This document shows positions 43,451-50,094 of a stretch of DNA of 64,000 nucleotides, in pieces (position 1 is the first letter of the stretch; the number at the start of each line of letters is the position of its first letter). The notes under the pieces are model-generated. The model was given only the letters and a program-made list of their open reading frames with translations. It ran no database searches and was not told the DNA's origin. Source of the stretch: Mytilus edulis (lineage: Eukaryota); assembly GCF_963676685.1 (NCBI RefSeq), contig NC_092349.1, positions 69,130,001 through 69,194,000 of the forward strand. Direction: 5' to 3'. The position numbers and the translations under genes were made by a program.

Positions 43451-44501
43451 TATATTATCAATGATTTGCATGATCAGATGTTGGTGAAGAAGTCTATGTG
43501 TTCTTTTAAGAAGCATCTCAAGTTTTAAAGTTTTTTTTTATAAAAAGTCGAAATTTTCAAGAAAAATTAGAACAGATTGATTTCTCCTTATGACACTGTA
43601 AGGAGAGACATACGTGAAATGAATAAATTGTTCTATTTCATATACTGCAAACGCAGTTTAAAAAGATGTAAAATAAGAAATAATAATCAGTCAAAAACAG
43701 CATGGGTGACATAAAATTACATTCCTCTTGATTTTATTATCGAAAAAATATTATGAAAATATCAAATATATGTGTAATGCTTTAGTCTTCCTTCTACAAT
43801 ACCAATTTGTTAACCAATACAAAATCAATAATAAACTTATTCATATATTAAACATTAAAAATACAGTGTTTGTCGTATATAAATCGTCCGGGACCTTGGA
43901 TAAGAATATAGGAAATTTTCAATAAAAATAGATCTCTTTCACCTTACAACCTGACCCATTTATATATACGTTTGTGTATTTCAAACTTTATCATTTAATC
44001 TAAATATATCATAATATTGGGGATATGCCGAATATATCATGTATATGGTACAGACATTTATCTATAATATAATTTTCTGTAAAAGTGAAATAAATAGTCT
44101 TCATTATTATTTTTCTTGATTACAAATGCATCTTATTTATTTTTTGAGGTTTAATATTGTGTTTTTATATTTGTAATTGGAAATAACAAATAAGTTTTAC
44201 CATTCTACCAATCACCTGAAGTACAAACGAAAGCAAAAAATAATAAAGCATATACAACAACATATAATAAACAAATATGTTTCACCCATATGCTTTAAAA
44301 AGTGATAATAATATTATTTATCTAATTGTATATTTGAACTTATTTCGTTCAGGAATAGCCACAGGTTCGAATGATTAATAGCGGTAAACTGAAGACTTCA
44401 TGTAGGAATTTCGAAGTGAAATAAGACATCAAATGTTCATAAGCTGTCTTGTTGTTATCAACCATACATGATTGTTATCAGCCATGCATGTTACATACGA
44501 T

Positions 44502-44539
44502 TGATTTTTTAACTCTGTATGCGTACATTGCCTATAAAA

Positions 44540-44570
<31 letters not shown>

Positions 44571-45230
44571 TTTGTATGCACTTTGAACAACAAATTTATG
44601 TGACGTATATAATTTTTCTAACGTCAGACACTCAAATCAATCCATGTGTTCTTAGACTGTAGATGTTATTGTGTCCTGTTAAATTGTTCCCTTTAAAAAG
44701 TTTTGGATTCTCATATATTCTATGTATAATTTTTGGACTAGTTTGAATCTCGGTCTATTTCTGTAATTTATTCTTACATACTTTTGATTTTTTAACCCTG
44801 TATGCGTACATTGCCTATGTAAATTTTAAAATTGTTTGTATGCACATTGAACGACAAATTTATGTGACGTGTATAATTTTTCTGACGTCGGACACTCAAG
44901 TAGATCCATGTGTTCGTGGATAGGTTTTTGTGTCCTGTTAAATTGTTCCTTTTAAAAGTTTTGGATTCTCATAAATTCTATGTATAACTTTTGGACTAGT
45001 TCGATTTCTGTAATTTATTCTTACATACTTTTGATTTTTTAACCCTGTCTGCGCTCATTGCCTATGTAAAATTTAAAATTGTTTATAATCCAGGTACTTT
45101 TGATAACTATTGTATGCACATTGAACGACAAATTTATGTGACGTATATAATTTTTCTGACGTCAGACACTCAAATCAATCCATGTGTTCGTAGATAGTAG
45201 ATGTTGTTGTGTCCTGTTAAATTGTTATAC
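44502..45230. repeat. Tandem repeat of a ~250-280-bp unit (~2.7 copies) running into a family B element
   Basis: Units restart at tgattttttaac(t/c)ctgt(a/c)tgcg near 44502, 44784 and 45031. Confidence 0.85.
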
Positions 45231-46217
45231 GATGATGACTGATGTTCCCATATTTTGACTATTTTATTGATTGTGACTGTTTATTTAACGCATCATGTAA
45301 ATGTAACGGAATTTGATGAGACTGTTATTAAAGTGAGAGGGTTAGCGCTATAGAACCAGGTTTAATCCACCATTTTCTACATTTGAAAATGCCTGTACCA
45401 AGTCAGGAATATGACAGTTCTTGTCCATTCGTTTTTGATGCGTTTTGTTTTTTGATTTTGCCATGTGATTATGGACTTTCCAAATTGATTTTCCTCTGAG
45501 TTCAGTATTTTTGTGATTTTACTTTTTGTTTATATCTAAAACAAACTAATGTCACCATTCAAACTGTGAAAATAACGACCTGGACTTAAGCTTTTGGCAT
45601 ATTCATTTTACATTTATTGTTAAGTTTTATAACCTGCAGATTGAATTGTTACCAATATTTCTAGATACGGAGGGCGAAGATGATTGGTTGATATCAGTCG
45701 ATATGTGTACTTAATCAGCAAACATCAGTTTGAATATTTTTACATTTGTCATTTCGGAGATTTTTCATCATAAATTTATTTCATAGAAGAACAAATATAA
45801 TGAGAATGTAGATTATATATTATAATTATTTTTTTTGATAACAAAACGGTATGATAAAATAACACAATATAATGCATTGCCAGTACTGCTACAAATGATA
45901 TTGAAAATTAATGATAAAACAGTTTGTATACGTCTGATATAATGGTTATGTTGACCAAATAAACAGAACCTTGTATTTCAGTGGTTGTCGTTTGCTTAAG
46001 TGTTACATATTTGTTTTTCGTTCATTTTTTAAATGTTAATAAGGCCATTTGTTTTCTCGTTTGAATTATTTTTATCGACATAAAAGTATTATTGTATACT
46101 CAAATTGTTATGGATAGATAAACAATATAAACTGCATGTGTTTTTTATAAATATAATTATTATTTGTTTTGCAGTTCTACTGTTAATAAAAACAAAATAC
46201 AAAATAAAAAAGATAAT

Positions 46218-46250
46218 ATGGGAGGATGTATTTCCAAGAACAACTATATG
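46218..46250 (+). CDS. Probable first coding exon of the cGLR gene (MGGCISKNNYM)
   Basis: Strong acceptor tatttgttttgcag| at 46174. The ATG is in good context (aatATGG). Donor ATG|gtataa at 46251 is phase 0, matching the phase-0 acceptor at 47694. The peptide fits M-G-x-x-x-S-K. Confidence 0.65.
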
Positions 46251-46922
46251 GTATAATATGATAATTATATACATCTATAGATGCATCATATAGTTCCGAT
46301 ATAATTTATTTCTTAAACGCAAGTTTCGTAATCGTTAGAGCCTATGCTTGTGTTTTAGATCACTAACAAATGAAATAAAAAGATTTTTTAGTTCATACAA
46401 TTAGTTTGAATATGAGCATGAATAGTATTTTACAACCTGTTAAGTTCAATAAAATCATCATCTTCATCAACCATGAAAACTCATATGATAGACGTGTATG
46501 TTTGTATAGCACACAAACAATTTCTGATCAGCACTTTATATTGAATAGTATGAAAAAAAACTTTCAAATTTCAGACAGCGACTCCGACTGATCACATTAC
46601 GGACTAGTGAGACGTACATGAACATACGCCAGAAACAAGCCTTTTTTGTTTTGTTTTCCTCAATTACATTACTTGAAGTACAGAAAAAAACATATCCAAG
46701 CGTAAATTCGAGGAGAATTACGTTATTTTATCATACATGTTCATTTATTAAAGTAGACAAAATTAACAATTTAATTATATATAAATTAAAATGTAATTAC
46801 ACAATCTCATCTCAACGCATTTTTACAGTCAATGATTGCAAAATATATTTTATAGTCATGGGAAAATTGTATTACAATTGTAGAAATATTTTACCTCTTT
46901 TGTCTTTAAACTATTTTGATCT

Positions 46923-46967
46923 GAGCGTCACTGATGAGTCGTAGGAAGACGAAACGGGCGTATGGCG
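46923..46967 (+). ncRNA. Minimal type I hammerhead ribozyme, sense strand inside the predicted cGLR intron
   Basis: cgtca-CTGATGA-gtc(gtaggaa)gac-GAAA-c(gggc)g-TA^-tggcg. Core intact, GUA triplet. Confidence 0.72.
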
Positions 46968-47450
46968 AATTAAATTATAAGCCTGGTACCTTTGATGACT
47001 ATAGTAATTACAAATGCAGGCATTACCATAGAAATATAATCTAAGCTTACAAGTCAAGAATGTTTCATCTTTATTTACCTAATTTTACCTGGGCAATTGT
47101 GTATCAAACAATTCAAAAGTGACTATCTGTTTTCCGTGAGATATACACGTGCTATTTGTTTTTCAAATTGACATTATTACAATACATGTGTACATTTCAA
47201 TAGGCAATTAACTACTTCGGATTAAAGAACTGATATTAGAAAGCAGGATCAAAAAATAGGAACGCTAGATGCACATTTCGTCAACAATGATTCATCAAAG
47301 ACGCTTGAATTCAAAACGTTAGAAAGGCCAACATAAAAGGAAGTTTACGTTGTACACTGAATAAAATTGTAATCATGACAATATCAATGGTTATTCATGT
47401 CAACATAGAAGTGCTGACTTCTTTGCCTTGCTTTCCCCTTATTATCACAT

Positions 47451-47592
47451 CTGGACTTGAAATCATAAAACTTTACTCAATGCTTAGAGCACAGAAATCA
47501 TGCTTGCAATATGAAATCCAACATTTTGATTGGTTGATTTTGGAGTATGAGAACAAAAAACTGAATCTAAAGTTTTATGACTTGAAGGCCTG
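47451..47592. mobile_element. Short MITE with ~24-bp imperfect TIRs in the cGLR intron
   Basis: ctggacttgaaatcataaaacttt versus reverse complement of the right end, caggccttcaagtcataaaacttt. Confidence 0.6.
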
Positions 47593-47694
47593 AACTGCCA
47601 TATGGTTATTGGCATCGCAGTAAGTACCCTTTTATCAACTGACGAATAAGATATTTATAAATAGCCTTTGTTTATAAGTCTTATTATTTTAAAG

Positions 47695-48954
47695 GGAGGT
47701 AATAACGTAAAACGTCGGTCAAGGAAAAACATTCTTCCATTACAAAGATGCATCAATGATATACACGTCTGGATAACACCAGATATAGAATTAGAGGAAT
47801 TCAATGACATCGTTCGATCAGCATATAGCATGTTGTATCTTTTAGCGACAAATATAGCTCAGTTCGATAAAAGATTTCAACATGATAAAATCATAGGTGT
47901 TGGAAGTGCGTTCGATGGAACGAAAATAAAAGAGCTGAACGAAATGGACTTTGTTTTACATGTAAACGTTCCAACTGATAGTACAATACTTGTCGCTGGT
48001 GACGATCCATGCCGAGCTCACATTTCAGTCAGTGAAGGTTCAAAAGAACAATGGAAAGATATGTGTGACTTTTCCGGTTATTTGAGTGATAACTTGTTGA
48101 TTCCTTTTAAAGTGTTATGTGTTCTTAGGAGTTTATTGATAAAAGCTATAGAAGAAATTAATTCAAATACAGATAAACAAAAGATAATCCGCGACTCTGG
48201 GGAACTAAGTTTGGCGTCAAACCAAATTGACGGATCTGGACCTAATGAAATAGTCTACATGCAGTGGATGTCAGCTAATTCTAAAAAAGTCACACAAATA
48301 TCTATTGATATAGTATTTGCTTTTAGGTGCGATAAAGAAATACTTCTTGACATTCGGGATAATATCCGCAAAGATGTTTGGGAGTTTATTTGGACAGAAT
48401 CAGAAGGAGTCGGCTTAGTTACTCCATCACGCGGTAGTAATAAGCGTTGTAGGTTATGTTCAAAGAGGGTGTGTCCTTGTTGGGTTTTCCAGTTCTCAGA
48501 TATTGAATGCAAAATGGTAAATAAAACAATACAAAACAATCACTGGAAATGCTATCGGGTACTAAAATATATATGCCAATCTGATTTTGCAATAAAGAAT
48601 CACACAACCCTTAAATGTCTCAGTTCCAATATGATTAAAAACATAGTTCTAGAACATGATCACACATGCTTTGGAAAGAATACACAGGAGTGTTTCATTG
48701 ATATTGTCAATCGTTTATATTCAGGAGCTATTGATTGTTTTTTACCGAAGTTCATACTACCCAAAACAAACATTTGGTGTTTTGATGAGGAGACATTATG
48801 TCCTAAACCACCAGATCAGATCATTTCCAACCTTTTTGAATTTGTTCACCGACTCAAGGCATCGGATATAAAACACTATAGTTTAACACAAGAACTTCAG
48901 TTCATTCAACGTCATTTACATATCAAGTTTGGGCAAATAGATCAGTCCTATTGA
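47695..48954 (+). CDS. Mab-21 family / cGAS-like receptor (cGLR) nucleotidyltransferase, main exon
   Basis: This is the only long ORF in the window. It has the pol-beta-type NTase signature VGSAFDGTKIKELNEMDFVL (hGS...E-h-D-h) and the third acid in ISIDIVFAF. Mab-21 C-terminal motifs are W..QFSDIE, CYRVLKYI, LSSNMIKNIVL and FLPKFILPKTNI. The track's TTG start lies in a pyrimidine tract ending ttattattttaaag| at 47694. AATAAA at 49047. Confidence 0.92.
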   Translation, partial: GGNNVKRRSRKNILPLQRCINDIHVWITPDIELEEFNDIVRSAYSMLYLLATNIAQFDKRFQHDKIIGVGSAFDGTKIKELNEMDFVLHVNVPTDSTILVAGDDPCRAHISVSEGSKEQWKDMCDFSGYLSDNLLIPFKVLCVLRSLLIKAIEEINSNTDKQKIIRDSGELSLASNQIDGSGPNEIVYMQWMSANSKKVTQISIDIVFAFRCDKEILLDIRDNIRKDVWEFIWTESEGVGLVTPSRGSNKRCRLCSKRVCPCWVFQFSDIECKMVNKTIQNNHWKCYRVLKYICQSDFAIKNHTTLKCLSSNMIKNIVLEHDHTCFGKNTQECFIDIVNRLYSGAIDCFLPKFILPKTNIWCFDEETLCPKPPDQIISNLFEFVHRLKASDIKHYSLTQELQFIQRHLHIKFGQIDQSY

Positions 48955-49202
48955 CCAGAATTTATCGTACTTATTTATCATTTCTCCTTGTTTTATATTC
49001 TGGTTTACATTTTTCATATATGATGGCTATTTATACATAATGTAAAAATAAAAATTTCTTACATCAATAGTTATAGAAACTTTTCAACTTTTGAAACTGA
49101 TACTGTGCAATTCAAATTCAACCACAACATATACAATAGTTTGTATTGAATACCTAGGAATACTTTTGATGTTGATATGTATCTATTTTGTTTACTTAAC
49201 TA

Positions 49203-49314
49203 CTGTGGATTTAATTATTTTCGTGGACAATAATTTTTGTGAATTAAGGAAAACTTACCTCTATCTACGACAGCCACGAAAATTGGTATCCAACGAATAA
49301 TAATAAAACCACAG
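49203..49314. mobile_element. Internally deleted Tc1/mariner-type MITE with TA flanks
   Basis: TA|ctgtggatttaattattttcgtgga ... tccaacgaataataataaaaccacag|TA. Confidence 0.7.
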
Positions 49315-50094
49315 TAATGATATATTCTTTAGTGTGTCGCTGGTTGTTTTTTGTTTGCGTTTCTGCTTCGTTTTTTTCTGTACGTGTTTTTTTATTGTTT
49401 GTTTGTTTGTCTTAGTAGTACACGTTTGCTATATTTTTTTGTCATATTATCTAAAAGTCAATATTTTGACTACAACAAAGTAGCGTATTGTTGTCACCGG
49501 GGATGTCGATTTTACTGTTACTACAAGGGTGAAAGCATTAGGGTCAACAAAAATGTTCAGAACAATATAATTTAATTATGATAAATGATCAAGGAAATAA
49601 CACCCCTTTTTTACTTACCTACCTGAACAACAAGAAATGATTAATTGTGACTTGAAATCGAGTCTATAACAATATTTTTGTGAATAGAAGAGAAAGTCAA
49701 ATGACTAGTTTTCTGAAAAGGGACTAAGATTGAACGAACAAAAACAGTGAGAGCTTTATAGAAATTGGATTTACAAAGATACCTGACATATCACATGCCA
49801 AATGATGTTATTCGTGACAAAAATAAAAGGTATCATAAACATAGACTTGTATTTTTATAGTATGATTATAGACTTTAATTGTGCGTTAACTATTAGTTTC
49901 TTCCAAGTTTATTTACTTCTTCCGGTTAATACCACATGCCAATCCTTAATTTTATCTCAAGTCATTTCGTCGGTAATCGGCAAATACCTCAATTTATAGA
50001 AAAAGAAGATATAGTAAAATTACCAATAAGACAAATCTTTACAAGAGACCATATGACATTGAAATTAACAAATATAGATCACGGTACGGCCTTC

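Follow-up and report, generated by a model that had tools for sequence, protein, structure and literature searches.

A 64,000-nt stretch of the Mytilus edulis genome (RefSeq assembly GCF_963676685.1, contig NC_092349.1, positions 69,130,001 to 69,194,000 of the forward strand; hereafter the window, in which gene positions are numbered) contains a gene for a cGAS-like receptor (cGLR) of 430 aa, the first eleven residues of which, MGGCISKNNYM, are encoded by a separate 76-nt micro-exon. This short peptide carries a putative acylation motif. Considering the spliced transcript, the fold and the catalytic residues together with the predicted lipidation steps, the gene is probably best explained overall as encoding a lipid-anchored, membrane-sensing cGLR.

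The gene has at least three exons, namely a 5′ exon, the 76-nt exon that carries the start codon and eleven residues, and a large exon with the whole enzyme. The following features were located with the help of RNA contig sets from two different studies (X1 and X2).

46175 to 46250, + strand: exon 2, an internal micro-exon of 76 nt with its own acceptor (sequence and X1 contig alignment), comprising 5′ untranslated region (46175-46217), the start codon (46218-46220) and the coding sequence of residues 1-11
46251 to 47694, + strand: intron of 1444 nt, GT..AG (joint in X1 and X2 contigs)
47695 to 48954, + strand: coding part of exon 3, residues 12-430 and the stop codon TGA at 48952-48954 (translation)
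48955 to 49092, + strand: 3′ untranslated region with AATAAA at 49047 (RNA contigs, records 7, 15 and 22, ending between 49024 and 49092)

The micro-exon is preceded by TTTTGCAG, a polypyrimidine/CAG acceptor, and followed by a GTATAA donor. Its first ATG, at 46218, lies in the context GATAATATGG (A at −3, G at +4), and the exon closes in phase 0. Exon 3 (coding part 1260 nt) opens at 47695 directly after TTTTAAAG. Its frame is shut 30 nt upstream by a TAG (47662-47664), and its first in-frame ATG lies 45 codons in, at 47830, where a start would delete the first helices of the fold. Exon 3 therefore has no usable start of its own. These coordinates bear out the original prediction, made from the sequence alone, that the cGLR open reading frame lacks a start and begins at a splice acceptor, and that the exon at 46175-46250 supplies MGGCISKNNYM in the matching phase. 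The micro-exon is present as a single copy in the 1.37-Gb genome, and an origin by exon shuffling or from a transposon was rejected for this reason.

The predicted junction 46250/47695 was found in RNA from both studies (a single X1 contig and a single X2 contig) as a joint 46249->47694 that skips 1444 nt with GT..AG ends (cut +1). Record 5 of X1, of 1313 nt, matches the window in two blocks, 46175-46249 and 47694-48861. RNA contig depth is nil across the intron except in repeats, indicating that the X1 and X2 contigs represent spliced RNA, and depth in the acceptor bin fits coverage starting at 47694. The contigs of another set, X3, cover exon 3 only. The spliced product has the anticipated 430 aa and is identical (0 differences) to the M. 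edulis RefSeq protein XP_071178053.1 (P0004, “uncharacterized protein”), with the exon 2 peptide forming its residues 1-11 and the exon 3 peptide its residues 12-430. The MGGC start is also present in XP_076107088.1 and CAG2230827.1, and these three public models share the exon structure. In RefSeq, the start MGGCISKNNYM is annotated in two species, M. edulis and M. galloprovincialis. The gene is expressed and already present in public annotation, and the gene model is very probably correct. The exon had been described as hidden, a term that does not hold because three public annotations use it. CAG2230827.1 is named “TRHDE” in the database, a label out of keeping with a Mab-21 protein. The 90%-identity cluster of the large open reading frame consists of M. 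edulis and M. galloprovincialis proteins, and unrelated peptides of 48-54 aa (P0006, P0007, P0012 and P0013) are placed in the same cluster.

The protein is almost certainly a cGLR-fold enzyme with intact catalytic residues. The original prediction had assigned it to the cGLRs with GS, E-x-D and D residues in place, and Pfam, alignment, Foldseek and a profile comparison with cGAS all supported this assignment. The features concerned are the following.

47902 to 47907, + strand: G81 S82, the GS of the nucleotidyltransferase active site (69-sequence alignment)
47911 to 48336, + strand: Mab-21 nucleotidyltransferase domain (PF03281; Pfam 37.5 bits, cut-off 24.1, E 3.3e-9)
47941 to 47949, + strand: E94-M95-D96, the metal-binding acidic pair (alignment, profile)
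48307 to 48309, + strand: D216, the third catalytic acid, in ISIDIV on the strand of residues 210-224 (alignment, profile, model)

The Mab-21 span was reproduced by a genome-wide family search. All five catalytic positions (G81, S82, E94, D96 and D216) are nearly invariant among the 69 aligned sequences. The family profile matched cGAS chains (E 1.8e-32) over profile positions 30-365, covering both lobes, and placed vGSfyEgTkI...pnEFDf on tGSyYEhvkI...pnEFDv of cGAS and eIsVDl on EISVDI. The AlphaFold model (pLDDT 84.2, pTM 0.86), built like the alignment from the database entry P0004, had its best Foldseek matches in cGAS of mouse, human and pig (E 3e-14), followed by the Tribolium cGLR 7lt2 and the oyster Cv-cGLR1 8gjw (both about 1e-12), with TM scores of 0.55-0.70 overall and 0.63-0.70 for 7lt2.

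A HMMER scan of 1.84 billion representatives yielded 68 relatives, the closest being a truncated M. coruscus model (85% identity). All the other relatives showed at most 30% identity, and the named ones were annotated as chiton “cyclic GMP-AMP synthase-like receptor”. A single-sequence word-index search returned the gene's own cluster alone, represented by the unspliced open reading frame; a profile word-index search gave 3 matches, and phmmer against the PDB gave none. In the tree, the gene falls within the molluscan radiation, on a long branch of 1.6 changes per site. It is a fast-evolving, lineage-specific cGLR and part of the bivalve cGLR radiation. A cysteine cluster, C-x2-C-x4-C-x-C (residues 264-275; 48448-48483), occupies a medium-confidence loop before the strand of residues 274-277 and may bind zinc. 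Its identification as a cGAS-type zinc thumb was rejected, since the cluster precedes the strand WVFQF while the cGAS insertion follows the next helix.

At the N-terminus, two features suggest that the protein is likely to be N-myristoylated and associated with membranes.

46221 to 46238, + strand: codons of Gly2-Gly3-Cys4-Ile5-Ser6-Lys7, N-myristoylation pattern (pattern match by script)
47710 to 47727, + strand: basic cluster K17 R18 R19 S20 R21 K22 (KRRSRK), just before the first helix (26-37)

The sequence GGCISK matches the PROSITE N-myristoylation pattern, G-{EDRKHPFYW}-x(2)-[STAGCN]-{P}, as had been expected of MGGCISK, and Cys4 and the basic cluster accompany it as described earlier. 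Ser6 and Lys7 are residues favoured by N-myristoyltransferase (NMT), and Cys4 is a candidate S-palmitoylation site. Residues 1-25 are of low confidence in the AlphaFold model, that is disordered, and the fold begins with helix 26-37. Cys4, K7 and K17-K22 thus all lie in a flexible segment, in the manner of an SH4-like signal. A basic stretch, KPRLRR, occupies the corresponding position in the M. coruscus copies. Both NMT and a STING ligand-binding domain are encoded in the genome.

These signals point to the following mechanism. The initiator methionine would be removed and NMT would acylate Gly2 during translation, after which Cys4 would undergo S-palmitoylation at a membrane, with further, electrostatic binding to acidic lipids through the KRRSRK cluster. 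A disordered tail of about 25 residues would thereby tether the nucleotidyltransferase core to the membrane on its cytosolic side. In this position the enzyme would sense its ligand and supply STING, itself a membrane protein, with a cyclic di- or oligonucleotide. The likely benefit would be the one shown for OAS2 and OAS1 p46, namely a sensor placed at membranes of viral replication or entry. Alternatively, the tether may keep the sensor from self nucleic acid, as has been proposed for cGAS.

Several observations weigh against a lipid-anchored cGLR. Expression of the gene is low, with a word depth of about 7, and the raw RNA run X21 gave 0 reads on it. The 70 nt of X1 record 5 that lie upstream of 46175 match nowhere in 43500-49400, which implies at least one further 5′ exon (at least 70 nt), and the coding frame is open from 46176 to ATG 46218 with no in-frame stop. 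Both facts would suit a translation start in the upstream exon, in which case Gly2 would be internal and hence not myristoylatable. An in-frame start upstream is excluded only indirectly, by the public models, of which two from RefSeq and one independent annotation begin at MGGC. In addition, the context of ATG 46218 is strong, and an upstream exon sharing the composition of the window (about 30% G+C) should be rich in A and T, so that stops are likely in it. We consider a start in the upstream exon highly improbable.

A further difficulty concerns the active site. The cGLR criteria were taken from Li et al. 2023 (PMC9980059), who give the expression h[QT]GS-X8-20-[DE]h[DE]h-X50-90-h[DE]h. The mussel protein has GS, E-M-D-F (11 residues after GS) and I-D-I, and leaves the literal expression unmatched with V for Q/T and a second spacer of 117. 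The whole clade likewise departs from the expression, with V in 46 of the 69 sequences and a median spacer of 123. It may be asked whether the protein is lipid-anchored and yet no ligand-activated cyclic-dinucleotide synthase feeding STING, serving instead as a regulator or scaffold or making another product. The very long branch, the low identity to any non-Mytilus protein (at most 30%) and a Mab-21_C score under the Pfam cut-off (17.9 vs 24.1 bits; E 0.0035) would agree with such a role, and other Mab-21 proteins that sit on membranes, MiD49/51 for example, are not known to be synthases. However, none of the catalytic positions has been lost, and both lobes match active cGAS/cGLR structures. 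A lipid-anchored non-synthase is quite unlikely in our judgement. That the enzyme is also an active cyclic-nucleotide synthase is a tentative reading, for which we would put the chance somewhat below even.

Conservation of the tag is shown only among very close species, whose proteins differ at 5-9 positions out of 430 aa. In M. coruscus, the models P0016 and P0084 stop short at about 190 aa, and in P0084 the same exon 3 start follows another upstream peptide, itself unverified. The suggested search for MGxCxS in orthologues and paralogues gave a divided answer: the same start was found in M. galloprovincialis, and an MGGC-like start in the large open reading frame was found at 0 of 38 paralogue loci. 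Most paralogues begin at an ATG that the large exon itself provides, a few residues ahead of the conserved first helix. No orthologue outside Mytilus appeared in the HMMER scan. Among 66 distant homologues, two (P0046 and P0066) fit the pattern at their annotated start, where about one is expected by chance, and two more are doubtful (P0073, with an internal MGNGHSK, and P0036, with Pro at position 7). An enrichment of the myristoylation pattern in the family was rejected, as these counts are not clearly above chance. Occurrence being so close to chance, we claim no subfamily, although the original prediction had spoken of one: the exon is single-copy, no paralogue shares its start, and no orthologue was found beyond the genus. 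The motif appears specific to one Mytilus gene, and independent gains elsewhere are possible.

These data also raise the question of whether the MGGC motif is itself a chance look-alike, carried by a protein that is acylated weakly or not at all and behaves as a soluble cGLR, as its paralogues do. Mytilus has about 200 cGLRs, so that a few bare MG-x3-[ST] starts are expected by chance; the supplement of PMC9980059 gives 218 cGLRs for M. galloprovincialis, and at least 94 Mab-21 loci were counted in the present genome. The number of matching distant homologues and a conservation shown in sibling species only are in keeping with this explanation. However, the bare pattern is far commoner than a start in which Gly2, Cys4, Ser6 and Lys7 occur together with a basic run, for which our estimate is about 4e-5 per protein. 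MGGC-type starts are tabulated as the standard predicted dual-acylation (myristoyl/palmitoyl) sites of plant CDPKs (PMC5509701). Furthermore, the large exon lacks an early ATG while at least 30 paralogues have their start inside the large exon, so that the micro-exon is essentially there to supply the tag. A dedicated coding exon that contributes nothing else argues for function, and this separate, single-copy exon adding the tag alone is the best argument that the tag matters. Overall, we regard a chance resemblance as unlikely and favour the lipid-anchored cGLR.

Other members of the family show N- or C-terminal features of a similar kind. P0046, P0066, P0073 and P0036 all belong to one other clade, which also includes P0039 and P0042 and in which several proteins have starts of the form MGN-x2-[ST] or rich in cysteine (MACCAP..., MCVKMRC...). 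This clade may represent a second, independent set of acylated cGLR-like proteins. In P0087 and P0038, which are distant cGLR-like homologues among unnamed ENA/Logan proteins, the last 22 or so residues are strongly hydrophobic. The end of P0087 looks like a tail anchor, possibly another route to a membrane-bound cGLR. In the accessible part of the supplement of Li et al. (PMC9980059), bacterial CD-NTases were the sole matches to MGGC-type starts. It may be, with a chance that we put somewhat below even, that covalent lipid anchoring is a recurrent and hitherto undescribed means by which cGLRs diversify in invertebrate radiations; the Mytilus enzyme would then be active, myristoylated and palmitoylated, and membrane-sensing, and other clades would have arrived independently at MGN starts (P0046, P0066, P0073, P0036) or hydrophobic tails (P0087).

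Like other animal cGLRs (cGAS, the Drosophila and Tribolium cGLRs and Cv-cGLR1), the mussel protein has a Mab-21 nucleotidyltransferase core and a helical lobe with the catalytic GS, E-x-D and D. Unlike them, it is only about 14-16% identical to the solved structures, and a distinct micro-exon bearing an acylation motif supplies its N-terminus, an arrangement found in no described cGLR in the literature searched. It also differs from cGAS in having no zinc thumb, its CxxCx4CxC cluster lying in a different loop. No myristoylated cGLR was found described in the literature searched. Src-family kinases, G-alpha-i and, in plants, CDPKs and BIK1 are examples of SH4-type dual-acylation signals, which share with the mussel tag a Met-Gly start, a Cys in residues 3-6, Ser/Thr at position 6 and basic residues thereafter. 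The SH4-type proteins are signalling kinases and G proteins, and the likeness is therefore in the motif only.

Closer in function are sensors of the sister family of nucleic-acid-sensing nucleotidyltransferases, which lipids place on endomembranes. Human OAS2 is N-myristoylated, and its G2A mutation abolishes Golgi location and antiviral activity, while human OAS1 p46 is C-terminally prenylated and requires prenylation (PMC13372824). Unlike the mussel protein, these enzymes belong to the OAS family and act through 2'-5' oligoadenylate and RNase L, and OAS2 has the myristate only, with neither a neighbouring Cys nor a polybasic signal. According to PMC8085147, which cites Barnett 2019, the N-terminus of human cGAS binds plasma-membrane phosphoinositide. 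The cGAS domain resembles the mussel tail in being a disordered basic segment that holds the enzyme at the plasma membrane; however, cGAS binds PI(4,5)P2 electrostatically via about 160 residues and without a covalent lipid. Membrane placement is thus established for sensors of this class, and the earlier statement that cGLRs are generally treated as soluble needs to be qualified by the OAS2, OAS1 p46 and cGAS cases. Were a cGLR to carry a covalent dual-acylation tag, this would be a new form of a membrane placement that is already known.

The surroundings of the gene contain transcribed repeats. One lies inside the intron, at about 46849-47045, with an RNA contig depth of 114-1058 compared with about 7 for the gene. 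The motif CTGATGAG...CGAAAC, which is the core conserved among hammerhead ribozymes, occurs in it at about 46930-46960, and its reads show “goes back” joints and cross-repeat joints (46940->45083 and 45519->46911), as would be expected of tandem or circular repeat RNA (retrozyme-like). The repeat had no match in Rfam at E up to 0.01, so that the ribozyme reading is a lead only. Upstream of the micro-exon, a repeat family at 45076-45666 and 45864-46060 has the highest RNA depth of the stretch, up to about 3400, and all four runs show numerous variant letters and loose ends there. These upstream repeats are a dispersed, abundantly transcribed element outside the gene. A Pfam search of ten neighbouring open reading frames gave no match. 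At a distance of 11.5 Mb on the chromosome that carries the window, a dense tandem array holds at least 10 Mab-21 open reading frames in about 64 kb (G000:C6:80716557-80780365; members L011, L012, L014-L016, L018-L021 and L034), some of them shortened.

cGLRs form a large family of animal pattern-recognition receptors, for few of which the ligands and sites of action are known. If the tag is inert, the present gene is one more annotated bivalve cGLR. Through its Gly2/Cys4 tag, one gene of the mussel repertoire of 200 becomes simple to test. If the covalent tether is real, the site at which a cGLR senses would be encoded in its sequence and could be changed by the gain of one tiny exon, a situation like that of OAS1 and OAS2, for which lipidation was recently found to determine what they can detect.

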